A DNA stretch of 64,000 nucleotides from Blastocystis sp. Blastoise. Lineage: Eukaryota > Protista > Bigyra: Opalinata. The stretch covers positions 620,001-684,000 of the forward strand of contig JBBPEB010000027.1 in assembly GCA_039096225.1 (NCBI GenBank), given 5' to 3'. Positions 17,259 through 26,485 of the stretch are shown piece after piece. Position numbers and translations under genes: made by a program. Every line of letters starts with the position of its first letter. Position 1 is the stretch's first letter. A model generated the notes under the pieces. It ran no database searches, was not told the DNA's origin, and saw only the letters and a list, made by a program, of their open reading frames with translations.

Positions 17259-17671
17259 TCATGCACTAATCTCTAATTCTTTACATATTTTATCATGCAT
17301 CTCTTTTGCTTTAATAGGATTCACATTTCCTGTCAAAGGATCTGTTCCAAGGGGTCTTCGGAATAATAATACATAAGGTTCGGGTCTATTTAATATGTGA
17401 TATTAATATTAATTCTAAAAATAGAGAATGAATCATGAATTACTTATAAAAAGCGTAATGGACCCAACCACGACTCATAGTGATGTTTAATGATCTCCAT
17501 TCGTTCTCAGATAGTAATCTATTATGAGGAATGGTTTTCGCGACACTCTCAGGTAAAATAACATGTCTACAAAACATAATTGATTAGAATTATAAAGTAT
17601 ATATACCTATATTCATATTGAGAATCATAATATCTCTCTGAATATGCTGGTTGAGTAATAGTCTTTTGCAT
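17259..17671 (-). CDS. CKS1: Cyclin-dependent kinase regulatory subunit CKS1/Suc1, 3 exons (absent from ORF track)
   Basis: Manual splice gives YSERYYDSQYEYRHVILP..RLLSENEWRSLNITMSRGWVHY..KPEPYVLLFRRP. Confidence 0.95.
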
Positions 17672-17939
17672 AATGAAAGTTATAATTTAAAATTTAAATA
17701 TATAAAAAAATTCAAATTTCTTTTATTGTTCTTTATAGTGAAACCGTTTCCAACAATTCAATTTACCCCCCTTTGAAGAAAACATGTGATTTTTATTCAT
17801 TTTTAGTATTTCTATATAGTTAATCTCACTATCAGGTCATTTTTAATTTTTAAAGCTTTTTGATTGGCTAATTTTCGTTCAAAACTTATTCAGCCAATAA
17901 AATTATAACAAAAAAAAGACTTATGCAAAAAAAACAAAA

Positions 17940-18760
17940 TTTTCATAAAAATTTTAAGTCGACTTTTGATTTAGACACAAAAACCCTATTAAACATATTT
18001 TATTAAAGAATTGACAATATTTTTTATTTACAGAGGATCGCACGATATCCAAACCGTTTTTATTTATTTTAAAGTCGCAATTCTGAAGAAAATGAGGGTC
18101 AATATTTTAAAATATTTTATAGTTGTGTTTAAAGTGAAGACCCTCTCAGAGTCACATATATGATTAAAAATGAATAAAAAGACCTCTATGGTTCGAAACC
18201 AAAATTCAGCCAAAAAGTCAAAAAATTATATTTTTTTTACACTGAAAAATTGAGCCGAGCCTATTTGTTCCATGGGCAGTCAGACCAGAGTTTTGAATTT
18301 TTAAAATATTTACGGGAATATTTTTCTCGTTCAAAACTGAGTCTATTTATATTTTATTGACTATCAGAGGATATAAGTGTTTTAGAAGAGTTTTTTCATT
18401 TGATTTTATTATGACTTAAAGTTCCGCATACAAAGAGTATGCCAAAACTTCTAAAAAAACTACTTTTCCTCAGAATCAAATAAAAGTCTTTTATAAAGTC
18501 ACTTTTAGAGTTAATTATGTAGCATGCAATCGTTTTAAGTCAAAATTAATAGTTTTTAGACGAGTCAGTCAACAGATCAGAGAGTCAACAAAAATGAGTA
18601 ATTTTTTAAAACTTGAAAGTAGTGAGATACAATAGTGTTGTGTCAATAGCTCAGTACATAACGTTTAAAACTTGTAATTTTAGTAGTGAGTCATAAAAAA
18701 TTAAAAAAAAATATAAAAGCTATTTTTACGAAAATTTTTAGTATTTGACTAACAAATTTT
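17940..18760. repeat. Subterminal short-motif array (AGTC/GACT) of the CACTA element
   Basis: About 15 AGTC/GACT-cored motifs in both orientations, including palindrome AAGTCGACTT at 17956-17965; further copies at 24526-24560. Confidence 0.55.
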
Positions 18761-18944
18761 ATTATATTAGTGAATTCATCTTTATTTTTAAATTATTATA
18801 ACCAAACATATATAGATATTTTTATACTTATTTATGGTGTTTTTTATACAGGTATGCACTTTATAAGTATTTATTTATTAGATATTTTCTACTTTTTTCA
18901 TAATTCTTTTTAGTTTTCCATTGTGTAAATCCTTTTCCTGACAG

Positions 18945-19300
18945 ATATTCTCCCAGGTCGGTTTCAAAGTGGTTCATCATGTGTACTTGTTGGGTTTTTT
19001 CTTATAAGGTATTTTATTACATTTGTTTATTTTTAATTTTTTTAGGTTGTTTATTAGGTCTTGTCGGTACTTCAAATAATCAATTAACAAAGTCTAGAAG
19101 GTATATAATTATATATATTTTTTTCTTTGCATTTAGATATTTTTCTTTTTTCTCTTTTCCTATGTTACAATATTCTTTTATTCTTTTTTTAATTTACTCT
19201 ATTTTTAGTATATGTTTATTATATATTATATTATATAGGAAGGTGCTTTTTAGTTGCCATTGGTGAATTAGGTTGCTGGTGTGTTCTTTAAAAATTAAAA
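18945..19300 (+). other. Spliced non-coding exon module A (leader to cargo)
   Basis: Short GC-richer exons 18945-19008 and 19046-19100 bounded by AG|..AAG|GTAT; no continuous ORF. Confidence 0.55.
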
Positions 19301-19332
19301 AGACTGATTTTACAAAGGATATTGGTCTCTAT

Positions 19333-19361
19333 ATGTCTATTCATGTTAATGATAATTATAC

Positions 19362-19398
<37 letters not shown>

Positions 19399-20074
19399 AA
19401 TATCTTTAGAATCACGGGAATAGTGCTTGATTTCTTTGAAGAGAGAGGTATATATAAGAATATATACAGAGTTTATTAAGATGGATATACACAAGCAGAT
19501 ATTTATGGATTAGAAGATATTCAAGTTGATATGTATATATATATATATATATATTATTTGTTATTTATTATTATACATATATTATATATTATATATTATT
19601 ATAGAGTAGAGCCATTTCCTTACCTGGAGCGTCATCTAGATGCGTCACTTGTACTAACCAATACATCTCATGATAAGAATTTACTTATTTATTATCATCA
19701 GGACAAACAGATTTATACCATAATAGATCTTTCTTACTCCCCCATTTCTGATAAATATACATATTCACTACGAAATAGTGATAATAGAGCATTTATTTTT
19801 GATTTATCTCAAGGTTCATATACGATTCTAAAAGAAATTCCAGCACGTGATCGTCTCGTGACTCCCCTCAATCCCCCTCCAACAGACCCCATTCTCAGTA
19901 CGAAACTCAAATCATTTGTCGAGGAATATACAGATAAACGATATTATTGTAAACCCTATAGTTTTTTATATAAAGCTATTGAAACCTCTTTATATGAATA
20001 TATGAATGTATTACAATCATTATGGGCAGATATCGACTTTGGAAAAGATGTATATATATATATATATATATATG

Positions 20075-20109
<35 letters not shown>

Positions 20110-21051
20110 GTTTGAATACTTATTCTCTATGTATAAATTAAGCATATATATTTATATACTTACTTCTCTTCCTTCACTTGTTACTATTTGTAATGAAATG
20201 TATATATATATTTGGGTATATTTATTATATATATATATAGTTTATTAAAATTTTTACCAAGTGATTTTCCCCGCCAAATTGATGTTGATGAATATACAAA
20301 TACACTGAAAATTGCTGAAAAACGAAAAATGTAATTATGATTTATTATATTATTAATATATATATATATATATATAGTTATCAAGAACCTTATGATTATC
20401 AAAAATTATATATTAATATATATATATATATATATTGATGAGATCAAGTATTAAAAATAAAATTGATGTATATAATAATTATATATATATACATATATAG
20501 GGAATAACGAATTTAACTACATTATTTAATGATCTTCAAACGGTAAAGAAATCTGCTATTTATAAATCACTTGTTCAATATATACGAGACAGAGTATATA
20601 TAACTATCTATATATATTACTTATATATATGTTACTTATTATATATAGGATATATTAGATGTGTTATTCCGACAGTGTTTAAATACAGAAACGTTACGAT
20701 TGTCTCTCTCTCTTCTTCAATATATATGCACTGTTATCCCTGTATTTACTTATTATTCTATTCTTATTATTATATATATACATATTCTTATTCTTATATA
20801 TATAGTTAACAAATAAGGATATTGATATATTTTATGAAGCTGTTCATAATAGCAGTATATATGAATACATTCAAGCAACTACCATTATATGTCAACTACT
20901 CCCTTTCTTCCCTAATCAACGTATATATATATATAGTATTATGCTTTTTATTATTATATATTCTTATATATAGAACGTGAATATTTACAAAGTTTATTAT
21001 TAAATACAAGTGTTGATATATGTACAGTACAAGTATATATTTATATATATT

Positions 21052-21082
<31 letters not shown>

Positions 21083-22930
21083 AATTATACATATATATAT
21101 ATACTTATATTCATATTATTTATAGAGTATTAAAGTATTAAGTAAAATTGTTAGTTATATATATAAATGACATCCCTGAATCACAACCTATTCCTGATTC
21201 TATTCGAAATTCTATTAAAACAGTTGGTGAGTATATTTTCCGTTAAGGATGTATTTGTACTCCCGAATCAAATGAAGAAAAGCACGTGATATTCTCATTG
21301 ATTCCACTTTATAAATCGGAGAGCTGTATATATATATATATATATATATATTTTATTATATATATATATTTTATTATTATTATATATTATTATTGTATAT
21401 TATTATAGACTTCTTAACAACATGGTTAAAGAATGCAATATATTTATATAAGTGTTTTAAATTATTCTTCAGTTTATTATGCTTTTAAACCTTCCTTTGA
21501 AATCCATTTCAATTCATATACTGTACTATCTCGTTTCTTACTTATAATATTATATCATATTATTATATATAATACAAAGAAGAGAAACAATATTAGTAAG
21601 TCTATATATATATGAATTGAATTATATTCCTCAAGATATGATATATACCTTATTAACAAGAATAGAAGAAATTATACAAATAGCTCGTTGTCCTTCTTCT
21701 TATATACCTCCTCAGTTACATACATTAAAAAGATTGATATTTATTCTATTTCCTTTTTTATGAGTCATAATAGTTTAAAAGAAGTCTATAGTCCTCCTTT
21801 TCCTCCTCCTCCTACTACTAATTATTTCACAGGTGCATATAAAGATACAGGAAATGATTTGATGATTGATAATGATATGGAAGTACCTGAAGAAGAAGAA
21901 ATAGGATTAATGAATACATATGAAGAGAAAGAAAGAGGAGAAGGAGAAGAAAAACCTAGTGGAGAACTGATTTATGGATTAAGTCATATACTGAATACGG
22001 TTGAAATTGAAGGTGAAGAAGAAACAGGAAAGAAAAAAGAAAAAGAAATGATAGATATGTTTACTTATATAGGAAAAAGAGAAGAAGATAATGATCATTG
22101 TATGTTTTGTATTTATTATGGTTTTATTATAGTTACATTATATTTATTGTATATATTATTGTGTGTATTATTATTATTATTATATTATATAATATATATA
22201 GCTATTGATGTTCAATATGTATATTCTCTTCGTAACCGACTGAAAACCGCGGATAAGAAGATATATATGATATAAATATACTGGATGACTTTGTATATAT
22301 ATATATATATATATATTATTATTGTTATTATTATTATTATTATTATATAGAATATATGTATTCTATGAATGTTTGAATCCCTCTATCAGCTACTTATGTC
22401 ACATGATTTTCTTATTACATATTTTATAGGATATACTTAATTATCCCCGGTTATATACTGTTATCCTGTTATCTCCTACTTCATCTTCCCTACTAAGAGT
22501 AGCGTGTTGTCTTTATGAATTATAATCGTGGGAAATACTTATTCTAGAATTTCTCAAGTATATATATATATATACTTTATTGTTCTCGTGATATTATATA
22601 TTTATATATATACTTTATTATTATATTTTGATATAATATATATATATATATATATAGTTATTACAATTCCATACAAACTACAGAAAAAGGATCATTATCT
22701 ATTTGAAGAATTACCACCATATAAAACATATATATACAACTATATACCTCCTATAATACCCACGTTTTATGTTCCTTATTGATAACCATGATTATCAGAA
22801 ACATGGTTATTATATATCTTGTATATATATATATATATATTATATACTTATTGTTATTACTATTATTATATTATTATTATTATATAAACTTTTGGATGAT
22901 TCCTTTATGTATTAAGATAATGATAACTCT
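19333..22930 (+). pseudogene. Multi-exon fragment of a large USP34/USP24/USP9-like deubiquitinase (N-terminal ARM region), decayed
   Basis: Spliced SLVQYIRDRDILDVLFRQCLNTETLRLSLSLLQYICTVIPLTNKDIDIFYEA resembles this family's ARM region (recalled, not searched); frameshifts at about 20410-20437, 21160 and 21755, in-frame TAA at 21244; no Cys/His catalytic boxes. Confidence 0.55.
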
Positions 22931-23823
22931 TGTATATATATATATTTATAATACTATATCAATATATATATATATTTAAATTATATATGGTTTTATAATC
23001 ATGTATATATAGAATAGAAAGGAGTTTAATAAATTATTCATATTATATATATTATAATGATATATTACTATATATATACTATATATTATCTTTTTTATCT
23101 ATCTTTTATTTTGTTTTATTTCTTTATATATTACTCTATTTGTTTTGTTGATATTTAGGAATAAAATTATTTATAGAATTCTTTTGGAATAATAGAAAAA
23201 AGAGTAAATATTAATCTACTTTATACTTTAATAAATTACATTCTTTATTATGTCTTAAACAACTCACAAAGCTTTCAAACATTCTCGTTTTATTTATACA
23301 TCTACAATAATCGATAAATTGTTGAAATAAATCATATTAGAAACAAAAGTTTATAAATTTTGAATCATGTCTCTATAAGTGATTATACTAAATATTTCTC
23401 TTGATTATCTAGGACCTTCTTGTTATAAATAAAATACTATTATATAAAAATAGCAGACAAATATATTTAATTGTAATTAAAGATTTTTTAAATAACTATA
23501 TTTTTGTTCTAATAAGTCTTAAACATGTTGTAATTAAATAATTTAGGTTCATAAACACATATTACATTTATAAATCATTTTTATATTCAAATAGACTTTT
23601 TATTAGAGAAAAAGGGAAAATTTAAAAATGTTGTAACCCCTGGAAACCCAGATTTTGTAAAGAATTTTATTATACAAAAAAAAAATTGTAAGGGGGAATT
23701 TCTCTTTGTTTATAAGATTCAACTTTTTCGCATATTTATTTTTATTTTTCTTTAATTTACAACTATATTTTATATATTATTAAATGTATATAATATTTTT
23801 TTTATTTATCTTATTCTATATAG

Positions 23824-24329
23824 GCTTACTGGTGTGTCAAAATAGATTCTAATAGGTCCTGATTCCTCTTCATTTTTACAGTTAGTTTATGAGTTTCCGG
23901 GCCTGAACGTATAGAAATCTGGTTGTATTAAAGGTATATATTTTTTAGCATTCTCTCTGCTATTATTATTTATTATCTTATATAGGTTCAACTATTGTCT
24001 CAGGTCTCCTTGGTCAACAAATCAATGCTTCTGAAGGTATTTAATTATATTTTATTTTTTTGAAATTAACTAATTTAATTTTTTATAGGTTCTAGGTACT
24101 CTCTGGTGTCCCTTTTGGTCTACACTGCTAGGATTTAGAAGGTATATTGTTATAATATATTTATTTTTTTACATTCTATTTTTATAGTTTTGGTTCTTGT
24201 TCAAGAGTTGGTCTAGAAGTGATGTTAGAAGGTATGTATTCTATATTATCTATATTATTATTAGTTCTATCAATTTATATATATAGTCCTCAGATACAGT
24301 TGCCAATTTATCAAAACAAATCAAAATAA
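23824..24329 (+). other. Spliced exon module B (5 short exons), probably non-coding
   Basis: Exons 23824-23933, 23986-24036, 24089-24141, 24188-24231 and 24287 onward, separated by about 50-nt GT-AG introns; all donors AAG|GTAT. Confidence 0.6.
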
Positions 24330-24837
24330 TTATTATTTTCTTATCTTTCTTGCTATTTTAATTATTATATATTATTTATTGTCTTTTGTTATATATATAT
24401 ATTGATTATCATTCACACAACGATTAAATTAATAATAAAATGACGTTTCTAAAAGAATTCTGAACGAATGAAAAGAAAGACCATATTCGACAAAAATAAC
24501 CTAGTTTTTGGCTACTCTTTTCGCCTGACTGAAAATAGTCTTAAAAAGTAATTTAGTCATTTTTTGGCAAAACTCTCCAAAAAGTATCACGGGAATACCT
24601 GATAGTGTCTTTAAGAAAAAAGTAAATATTATATAAACATAATAATATATGTTGCAAATATATATTTTATAAATGAAATAATAAAAATATGAAACAAAAC
24701 AATTAAAATTTAGCAAATAAGCAAAACTACACATTGACAACTATATATAAACATTCATTAATTAAAAAAATAATAATAATTGTTTCTAATAATGAATTAT
24801 TTATATAAAACTTAATGAATTAATTTTATGTTTTTAT

Positions 24838-26485
24838 TTATTGAGTGAATTGTTCAAGAGTATGAATAAGAACCTTATATAAAGGATCAACAGAAGAGAC
24901 TAAAAGTCTTTCATTAGGGCTATGAGGGAAGTTAAGATCAGGACCAATAGAAGTACACTTCATATCAGGATATTTACTTTGGAATAAACCACATTCAAGA
25001 CCAGCATGAATAGCATATACCTTAGGATCAACCTTAGTAACTTCTCTGTAAGAATTAATAAGAGTTTGAGTAAGAACGTTAGATACATCAGGTTCCCAAC
25101 CAGGATAAGCATATATATAATAAATATATATTGTTGAATAATAAATATTGAATAATAATAATAATAATAATAATATAATAAATAATAAATAAAAAATAAA
25201 AACATACGCACCAATTTGTTCAGAAAGAGTAACTCCAGCAAGAGTACAAAGAGAGCCAATCTTCTTATACATATAATCTAATTGAGAAGCAGAAGAAGAA
25301 CGAACAGAAGCAGTAAGAGTCACTTCATCTTCCTTTTCAACTTTAGCAATAGCACAAGTAATAGAAGTTTCAACTAATCCAGCAACATCAAAGTTCATCT
25401 TTTGAGGACCGAAGGGGAAAACATTGAGGAAATCAATAGTCTTTTGAGTAGATTCTAAAGTAAAAGGTTTCTTTTCACAAACACAATCAACAGCTTCAAT
25501 AGCAATATCATTTTCAATACGAGTATATTCGTGTTTAACATGAGCAAATTCACGTTCAAGATCACTAATAATCTTTTCTTCAGCAGCTTTTTCAATAGCA
25601 ATAACAGCATCACATCTACGAGGAATAGCATTATGAACAGAACCACAAGTATAATCAACAAGTCTGAATTTTTCTTGATCACATTTCTTTAAGAGACGAG
25701 CCATAATATGAAGAGGATTAGCTCTACCTAAGTTAATATCACAACCAGAGTGACCACCAACAAAGTTCTTAATAGATATCTTCTTAAGAATAGAGTTTTC
25801 AAGACCTTCATGTTCTACAGGAATACCTAATTTCATAACGAAACCTCCAGCACAACCAACACAAACAGCATTTTGTTCTTCAGAATCGACGTTAATAAGA
25901 TATTTACTCTTAAGAACACCTTCTTCAAGACCAGCAGCACCATATAAACCAGTTTCTTCATCACGAGTAACTAAAACTTCAAGAGGACCATGCTTGAATT
26001 CTTTATTTTCAAGAAGACCAAAACAAACAGCAATACCAGCACCATCATCAGCACCTAAGGAAGTACCAGTAGCCATAATGTATTTATTATCAACAAGACG
26101 AGGAACAAGAGGATCAGTTTCCATATTAATGTCAACATGATCATCCTTTTGACAAACCATATCCATATGGCATTGAAGACAAATAGAAGGTTTATCTTCA
26201 AAACCAGGAGTAGCCTTCATACGAACAATAATGTTATCAGCTTTATCAATATAAACATCATGACCTAATTCTTTAGCACAATTTTCTAAATAAGCAAGAA
26301 TCTTCTTATGTCTGAAGAATTCTTCACCTTGATTAGAACCACGAGGAATTTGAGTTACATTAAATAAATATTTCCAAACATTAATATCACCAGGAAGAGT
26401 TAAAGCTAAAGCTTTATGAGCAGGAGATTTTATTAATAATATATAGATCTATATAAATTACATACGGTACCATAAAATCAACCAT
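24838..26485 (-). CDS. pepD: Aminoacyl-histidine dipeptidase / peptidase D (M20C), bacterial-type
   Basis: TQIPRGS, LQCHMDMVCQK, TSLGADDGAG, RDEETGLYGA, GGHSG.DI, IHAGLECG, HSPNER. Confidence 0.93.

Follow-up and report, generated by a model that had tools for sequence, protein, structure and literature searches.

In a 64-kb stretch of the genome of Blastocystis sp. Blastoise (C2:620001-684000, hereafter the window), one of the AT-rich tortoise isolates (PMC12129017), we investigated a 6,781-bp element (17827-24607) enclosed by terminal inverted repeats (TIRs) and TCT duplications. The evidence supports its identification as a genuine TIR transposon with CACTA-type ends that is non-autonomous, exists in several copies and was recently active. 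Near-identical copies of the element differ in which introns of an internal transcription unit they retain. Taking all parts together, we consider it probable that the element is a non-autonomous CACTA member which entered the spacer between the pepD-like gene and CKS1 recently by cut-and-paste, is mobilised in trans, carries a spliced unit, and belongs to a family undergoing intron loss guided by RNA or complementary DNA (cDNA).

Ends of the element and site of insertion

The left end of the element reads TCT followed by CACTATCAGGT (17824-17837; the letters inside the TCT run CACTATCAGGTC through 17838), and the right end reads ACCTGATAGTG followed by TCT (24597-24610). The TIRs are perfect over 11 bp and begin CACTA, and the two arms differ beyond base 11. 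An earlier annotation of this DNA, made from its letters (hereafter the sequence-only reading), had described 11-bp perfect CACTA repeats with matching 3-bp flanks, and we read the same letters at both ends. The exact 11-mer is found at only two sites in the window, inverted relative to each other. Genome-wide (34 contigs, 33.3 Mb, 23% GC), it occurs 29 times, compared to 3 times for a reversed control. With the element excised in silico, the start of CKS1 and the stop of the pepD-like gene, both on the minus strand, are separated by 155 bp (17672-17826), a single TCT and 227 bp (24611-24837). The resulting spacing of ~385 bp agrees with the tandem arrangement at about 390 bp proposed in the same reading.

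A family of recently amplified copies

Further copies were sought with the terminal 300 bp of each element end. Sequence letters were obtained from 63 loci; for the transposase loci and the central parts of most copies, coordinates alone are known. With the terminal queries we observed six further copies that were 98-100% identical and dozens more that were 83-90% identical. Copies are named here by contig, the window copy being the C2 copy. Identity to the six sister copies reached 99.1-99.8% in the 5' 1.8 kb and 99.1-99.9% in the 3' 1.8 kb, indicating that the transposition burst was recent. The near-identity of the sisters thus bears out the earlier description of a recent insertion that has kept its ends intact.

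All 30 of the 5' ends examined start exactly at CACT and adjoin unrelated DNA, and AGTG was found at the exact boundary in 28 of the 30 3' ends checked. Three terminal variants were present at the 5' end (CACTATCAGGTC, CACTATGAGGCAC and CACTGGTAGGCAC), while the 3' ends terminate in ACCTGATAGTG or GCCTACCAGTG. A 32-nucleotide pattern of the 5' end gave 49 matches in the genome and none in the control. Identical 3-bp flanks were seen in 15 of the 17 copies for which both ends were in hand (TCT, AAT, TTC, TAT, TTA, ATT, ATC, TTT, TCT, TAT, GGT, AAT, AAA, TCT and TAT). Since simple arithmetic puts the chance match of two 3-mers at ~0.03 (about 3%) in the base composition of this genome, this frequency is far from chance. 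The sequence-only reading had turned on the recurrence of paired termini elsewhere in the genome, and both the 11-mer and the 32-nucleotide pattern do recur, with target duplications at nearly all paired copies. The C15 copy, nested in a different repeat, provides direct evidence that insertion duplicated 3 bp: once rebuilt, its empty site could be aligned gap-free across the junction to two uninterrupted paralogues, each carrying a single TAT. A second candidate empty site, on C28, was discarded, as the match proved to be a repeat internal to the flank.

Two of the copies showed additional rearrangements. On C34, a 558-bp 5' piece and a 3' piece (element position ~3500 to the end) lie 36 kb apart (C34:544136-547281 and C34:579835-580391) with unmatched flanks (ata and aat); these are either a broken or rearranged copy or two remnants of aberrant excision. 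Near its 3' end (L060:429-1490), the C30 copy contains a nested 1,062-bp foldback element whose TIRs are perfect over 202-213 bp (GAGAAGTTGATTAGGGTCGTCC...) and which is flanked by a 9-10-bp duplication (CTCTTTTCGC). It looks like a very recent insertion of a Mutator-like miniature inverted-repeat transposable element.

Intron presence and absence among near-identical copies

We aligned the window copy with the C30 and C31 copies, to which it is 99.4-99.5% identical in aligned columns. The longer differences in this comparison were all exact GT...AG segments, with the exception of a 27-bp and a 20-bp indel in TA repeats. Including the other copies, we observed 11 sites on the plus strand at which an exact GT...AG segment is present in some copies and absent from others (Table 1). 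The boundaries were base-exact at all 11, and thus neither random deletion nor slippage explains them. Nine of these sites match splice junctions of the public gene models P0001, P0002, P0009 or P0010.

The distribution of the losses fits no single tree. The C15 and C29 copies differ by one substitution in 1.8 kb and yet differ in the intron at 23879, and the C30 copy shares one loss with the C2 and C31 copies but keeps an intron that both lack. Such a mosaic pattern implies repeated independent losses or conversion between copies. The 42-bp segment at 19300 is also present in diverged relatives and is thus taken as ancestral, which makes loss, and not gain, the parsimonious direction. As a rough estimate, at least 12 loss events have occurred across 7 copies that differ by 0.1-0.9%. 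Together, these patterns point to recurrent, mosaic intron loss, most likely via spliced RNA or cDNA.

Directly upstream of the lost-intron site at 23879, we observed a patch (23858-23877) with about six substitutions in 20 bp that are unique to the window copy (cctgattcctcttcatttttac, versus cctaattggtcttcttttttaa in five sisters). Judging from these letters, it looks like a short conversion from a diverged template.

Differences of this kind might also arise in assembly or polishing, through RNA-derived reads or collapsed copies, or through slippage of (TA)n. The segments are indeed TA-rich and microsatellite-like, a context in which long-read consensus and alignment are error-prone; the 27-bp indel (20201-20227) is not bounded by GT..AG; and the intron-less junctions are known from the assembly sequence and not from individual reads. 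We nevertheless consider an artefact very improbable, since the 11 larger events are exact from GT to AG, nine of them at independently annotated splice junctions, since the set of losses, in unique flanks, differs from copy to copy, and since long DNA reads were combined with short reads and Hi-C to build the assembly (PMC12129017).

Modular organization of the elements

Comparison of the element with its relatives revealed a 5' backbone, an interior and a 3' backbone (Table 1). A second CACTA family, with termini CACTAGTAGGCA, shares the interior and 3' part with the window element and has a different 5' part. The CACTGGTAGG subfamily shares ~1.2 kb of the 5' backbone together with the 3' backbone and has a different interior. 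Since backbones and interiors are combined differently in these two groups, the elements are mosaics built from modules. A CACTAGTAGGCA-type element precedes the C31 copy by 10 bp and is oriented the same way (3' end of this neighbour, ...GCCTACTAGTG; within C31:1140126-1143426). In Arabidopsis, hybrid Pack-CACTA elements were proposed to form from closely spaced direct elements via aberrant excision (PMC6379663).

The 5' backbone contains an ultra-conserved block of 120 bp, 95-98% conserved across 29 copies of three subfamilies that are otherwise ~87% alike. A 39-mer from the block gave 49 matches in the genome at up to 3 mismatches, none of them at the transposase loci, and none in the control. 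From its conservation, the block may be a cis element, either a promoter or a binding site for the transposase or another protein. Upstream of it, at 18150-18185, three alternative patches are distributed independently of the terminal variant and are reticulate among subfamilies, a distribution that suggests recombination or gene conversion among copies. A B-box-like motif, GGTTCGAAACC, is present in the 5' backbone at 18190-18200. No transfer RNA (tRNA)-like gene or known RNA cargo was called in the element by ARAGORN or, over 17500-24900, by Rfam at E values up to 1.

The only recurrent motif, ACGGGAATA, is found three times in the element, always on the plus strand: within the 120-bp block (18312), right after an intron (19414) and abutting the 3' TIR (24589). 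The whole window holds four occurrences, compared to 0.26 expected; the motif may be a subterminal binding site.

A spliced orphan unit in the interior

The exons of the interior were searched singly or via public gene models of sister copies. The mapped unit has at least 10 exons, and the public models are ~435-620 amino acids long. When exon A, the largest one, was compared by phmmer with 1.84 billion representative proteins, only two credible matches emerged, P0001 (589 amino acids) and P0002 (435 amino acids). A word-indexed search with P0001, covering proteins of 324-1030 amino acids in a library of 5.8 billion, returned 13 proteins, all of them "hypothetical protein WA158_..." from Blastoise and all transposon-borne. 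Six-frame matches of exon A in the genome all fell within transposon copies, as did those of P0001 residues 225-589 among the matches listed (112 of 166 candidates scored; the list stops 8 matches short). Neither the six-frame searches of the genome nor the protein-library searches revealed a single-copy host parent gene for the cargo. Pfam searches of the exons and of eight public models gave nothing save a below-cut-off piece of DDE_3 in the chimeric model P0016, and a profile search of the cargo against the PDB gave noise only (E of 0.09 or worse). AlphaFold2 produced no confident fold for P0001 from an 11-row alignment (mean predicted local distance difference test score, 34.5). HEAT/ARM-like leads from ESM Atlas features (0.80-0.82) were rejected, as shuffled proteins reached the same level.

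Blastoise gene models were selected for strictly RNA-sequencing-supported introns (PMC12129017), and a polyA gut metatranscriptome contains 20% of the words sampled from the stretch. Thus, the element family appears to be transcribed and spliced.

In the CACTAGTAGGCA family, exon A is 40-54% identical and contains shared stop codons, and some downstream exons (region of residues 226-296) are open and 84-92% identical in protein across families. The N-terminal halves of the models from that family (P0013-P0016 and P0019) are unrelated to the cargo of the window element (for example, ...NNGLWVFINKHLFLDYGG...) and gave no Pfam match, indicating that a different 5' cargo is joined there to the shared downstream exons. 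As the cargo is common to two families that are 76-79% identical, it appears to be old and partly decaying, and not freshly captured; it would be either an old capture or a hybrid derived from neighbouring elements.

The sequence-only reading had proposed a non-autonomous, gene-capturing CACTA element in a gut protist. A non-autonomous CACTA element in a gut protist is what we found; gene capture is the part that was not borne out, as no host parent was identified for the cargo and its listed genome matches fall in transposon copies. We therefore weighed whether the element is a true Pack-CACTA, with an interior taken from one or more host genes and shuffled by transposon ends. The same 5' and 3' backbones do surround different interiors across subfamilies, and the interior resembles a host gene in its introns, its open exons and the gene models called on it. 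The C31 copy, 10 bp from a direct CACTA neighbour, has the arrangement proposed to form Pack-CACTAs, and the Arabidopsis study also accepted elements whose cargo was of untraceable origin (PMC6379663). A parent gene was nevertheless not found: exon A and P0001 residues 225-589 match transposon copies only (among the matches listed), the 1.84 billion representatives yielded only the gene models of the copies themselves, the 13 proteins of the word search are all transposon-borne Blastoise proteins, and the cargo has no Pfam or PDB match. The term "Pack", and gene capture with it, is reasonable but unproven, and we regard this origin as possible but somewhat doubtful.

The interior could alternatively be an accessory TnpA-like gene of the element itself, which would then be a dSpm-like deletion derivative and not a Pack element. 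This would fit the occurrence of the unit in two or more families whose DNA identity is only 76-79%, the open state of several exons with the protein identity across families given above for residues 226-296, the persistence of frames of 183-319 codons in DNA of 23% GC, and a start codon close to the conserved 5' backbone. We consider it unlikely, however, as the unit is unmatched at the C19, C23 and C5 transposase loci, exon A shares stop codons in the related family, the public models of sister copies vary widely, no DNA-binding or other domain was found, and the AlphaFold2 model is unconfident.

Candidate transposases elsewhere in the genome

Six-frame reading of the element gave a few exon-like frames only. 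Transposase_21 had no match within the 64-kb window, and no Pfam family matched either the open frames of the element or the public models for its copies, in agreement with the earlier statement that it carries no transposase. A genome-wide six-frame search with Transposase_21 (PF02992) gave four places above the curated cut-off, with open frames of 744-758 amino acids (Table 1), all outside the window and outside every copy of the family. The 3' 1.24 kb of the element (23303-24545) is 79-80% identical to C19:227758-229017, C23:197509-198767 and C5:479329-480588. These stretches lie downstream of a transposase frame, at 6.6 kb on the same strand on C19 and C23 and at 19.6 kb on C5, indicating that the 3' backbone is common to transposase-bearing elements. 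Mobilisation of the window element in trans by Transposase_21 enzymes encoded elsewhere in the genome is thus likely, although indirectly deduced. A degenerate terminus pattern, CACTNNNAGGNA, gave 575 matches versus 558 in the control (listed for contigs C1-C7 only); too degenerate to reveal the ends of the transposase-bearing elements, it did show the CACTAGTAGGCA termini of the related family.

Membership of another TIR superfamily with 3-bp target duplications (PIF/Harbinger, Zator or Academ), with ends that merely resemble CACTA, would be compatible with the lack of an encoded transposase and with the fact that the termini of the Transposase_21-bearing elements are unread. The duplications, however, show no TWA preference (TCT, AAT, TTC, TAT, TTA, ATT, ATC, TTT, GGT and AAA), every subfamily ends CACTA/G...T/CAGTG, and the 3' 1.25 kb is homologous to DNA adjoining Transposase_21 frames. 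We consider this assignment very improbable.

Flanking genes

The gene at 17259-17671 was named CKS1 from the motif EYRHV..LP...EWR..G...S.GW.HY, which we take to be the CKS motif. The dipeptidase gene on the other side matched Peptidase_M20 (2.4e-12) and M20_dimer (6.8e-08) in Pfam. As the insertion lies 155 bp upstream of CKS1, a cell-cycle gene, the element may affect it.

Table 1. Coordinates of the element, its parts, its sister copies and associated loci (window positions unless a contig is given)
Feature	Position	Strand	Remarks
Left target-site duplication TCT	17824..17826	.	Same triplet as 24608-24610
5' TIR, CACTATCAGGT	17827..17837	+	Sequence ends and genome-wide 11-mer count
5' backbone, common to subfamilies with termini CACTATGAGGCAC or CACTGGTAGGCAC	17827..19300 (approximate end)	+	~79-99% identity, at least 40 places
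Ultra-conserved 120-bp block in 5' backbone	18227..18346	+	95-98% column identity, 29 copies, three subfamilies
GT..AG segment	18867-18913	+	Absent from C21 copy; outside public models
Multi-exon transcription unit, orphan gene, TA-rich GT..AG introns	18979..22440 (approximate end)	+	Exon-by-exon tblastn of P0001, P0002 and P0010
Site of 42-bp GT..AG segment	19300..19301	+	Kept in C13, C15, C29 and diverged C21; absent from C2, C30 and C31
Intron, 48 bp, GT..AG	19362..19409	+	Present in window, absent from C31
Intron, 72 bp, GT..AG	19533..19604	+	Present in window, absent from C30
Exon A, largest exon, ~147 codons (open frame 211 codons, 23% GC DNA)	19606..20049	+	
Interior and 3' part, collinear with second CACTA family (termini CACTAGTAGGCA)	19791..24320 (approximate)	+	76-79% identity
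Intron, 61 bp, GT..AG	20050..20110	+	Absent from C29 (match coordinates); junction FGKD/FEYLF in P0001
Intron, 33 bp, GT..AG	20468..20500	+	Present in window, absent from C31
Intron, 64 bp, GT..AG	20742..20805	+	Absent from C15 (match coordinates); junction CTVIP/LTNKD in P0001
Site of 43-bp GT..AG intron	21216..21217	+	Kept in C30 and C31; absent from window; junction RNSI/KTVG in P0009 and P0010
Intron, 83 bp, GT..AG	21326..21408	+	Present in window, absent from C31
Intron, 102 bp, GT..AG	22100..22201	+	Absent from C29 (match coordinates); junction DHS/IDVQ in P0010
3' backbone	22838..24545	+	79-81% to DNA downstream of C19, C23 and C5 transposase frames
Site of 35-bp GT..AG segment	23879..23880	+	Kept in C15 and C30; absent from C2, C13, C29, C31 and C34; outside public models
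3' TIR (ACCTGATAGTG on plus strand)	24597..24607	-	Sequence ends
Right target-site duplication TCT	24608..24610	.	Sequence ends
CKS1, flanking host gene, three exons	17259..17671	-	Start codon 155 bp from element 5' end
M20 dipeptidase (pepD-like), flanking host gene	24838..26220	-	Stop codon 227 bp from element 3' end
Sister copy	C13:199196-205849		
Sister copy	C15:464068-470784		
Sister copy	C29:945797-952423		
Sister copy	C31:1135289-1141926		
Sister copy	C30:148474-156340		
Sister copy, broken	C34		
Transposase_21 frame	C5:500192		
Transposase_21 frame	C19:220920		
Transposase_21 frame	C23:205345		
Transposase_21 frame	C23:375036		

A model for mobilisation and intron loss

We propose that the element would have entered the pepD-CKS1 spacer by cut-and-paste, duplicating TCT, and that a Transposase_21 enzyme would act on it in trans, the CACT...AGTG ends together with subterminal DNA being what the enzyme recognises. 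Breaks would arise as excision gaps or in the (TA)n-rich introns. The spliced RNA of the family, or cDNA produced by reverse transcriptases of the genome, would then template or bridge their repair, with one or a few introns popping out per repair event. Spliced RNA was shown to promote intron pop-out during break or gap repair in yeast and human cells (PMC11390984), and reverse-transcriptase-mediated intron loss was inferred over deep time for plant CACTA transposase genes (PMC4158355). As a source of reverse transcriptase, the genome contains at least 20 RVT_1 frames of 2,400-2,787 amino acids without stops.

Several of these frames (C10:55024/63615, C13:624268/632859, C14:664277/672868/681360, C29:412516/421012 and others) lie in tandem at a constant spacing of 8,591 bp, one pair on C29 being spaced by 8,496 bp. 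This arrangement points to tandem arrays of a retroelement that is large and apparently intact.

A number of observations weigh against this model. The evidence for transcription stands at the level of the family (models of sister copies and the metatranscriptome) and is not direct for the window copy. For three of the 11 intron events the evidence consists of match coordinates, with GT and AG bounds taken from the window sequence. A single loss can pass to other copies by gene conversion, and the link of intron loss to RNA and to transposition is itself a model. In genome-wide pattern searches, none of the transposase loci carried the 11-mer, the 32-nucleotide 5' pattern or the conserved-block 39-mer, so that trans-mobilisation is something we infer; moreover, the transposase-bearing elements are known by coordinates only, and their termini are unread. 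Of the autonomous partner to which the sequence-only reading had looked, we thus found Transposase_21 frames with a shared 3' backbone, at loci that were not among the 11-mer or 5'-pattern matches. Finally, no 8-10-mer occurs more than three times in the terminal 700 bp, and the subterminal repeats that had been listed as a defining feature are not evident there. Subterminal repeat arrays are typical of plant CACTA elements and are not universal in the superfamily.

More tentatively still, and with considerable doubt, we raise the notion that the family is a natural reporter of RNA-guided DNA rewriting, in which introns are lost piecemeal far faster than in ordinary genes. If so, intron loss could be watched and manipulated in a culturable protist, and the RNA-templated route could be compared with the reverse-transcriptase route. 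The organism offers a tractable system for such routes: its paralogous reporters are numerous, and the genome has both intact reverse transcriptases and a transposase candidate.

Comparison with known systems

Both CACTA elements and the Pack elements that carry genes belong to textbook plant biology; morning glory and soybean have gene-carrying CACTAs, which resemble the window element in having gene-like cargo. We found no report of CACTA elements in Blastocystis in the literature searched, and the Blastoise genome paper gives only a bulk repeat fraction (PMC12129017). With a large, recently active set in Blastocystis, the range of CACTA elements comes to include a stramenopile gut symbiont. 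Most worth attention is the rapid, mosaic loss of introns among young copies, although the underlying process is already known: copies with 99.1-99.9% identity that nevertheless vary at 11 intron positions are rare, direct evidence on intron loss.

With short TIRs of the form CACTA/G...T/CAGTG and a 3-bp target duplication, the window element has features of CACTA/En-Spm (CMC) elements; subterminal repeat (TnpA-binding) arrays at both ends are not evident in it. Its ends and duplications support classification as a non-autonomous CACTA/En-Spm element, the transposase link being partial. Maize dSpm/I, the non-autonomous form of En/Spm (CMC), similarly has CACTA...TAGTG termini, an 11-bp TIR, a 3-bp duplication and no transposase, and it depends on a related Transposase_21-type enzyme encoded elsewhere, as the window element would. 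In contrast to dSpm/I, the host here is a stramenopile gut protist, no subterminal repeat arrays were seen, the interior does not consist of a shortened transposase gene, and no autonomous element with the same ends was identified.

As in Pack-TYPE elements, there is no transposase between the ends, and the same ends surround different interiors; a host-chromosomal parent was not found, homologues in the Blastoise genome being confined to transposon copies among the matches listed. The Arabidopsis Pack-CACTAs (Catoni et al. 2019, PMC6379663) likewise have CACTA ends around gene-like, intron-bearing, non-transposase DNA, differing interiors between shared ends, close direct repeats and some untraceable cargo. 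Unlike in these elements, we found a host parent for no part of the cargo here, and the cargo is common to two families that are 76-79% identical.

With regard to intron loss, the family shares with the system of Jeon et al. 2024 (PMC11390984) the signature of exact intron removal from DNA at a transcribed, spliced locus. Their assay, carried out in yeast and human cells, was engineered with Cas9, whereas the window family presents a natural pattern, known from sequence alone. Among the plant elements studied by Buchmann et al. 2014 (PMC4158355), it is ancient families that are told apart by losses, and the transposase gene is the one affected. In the window family, in contrast, losses distinguish copies with 99.1-99.9% identity, fall in a non-transposase unit and remove different introns from each copy, in a mosaic.

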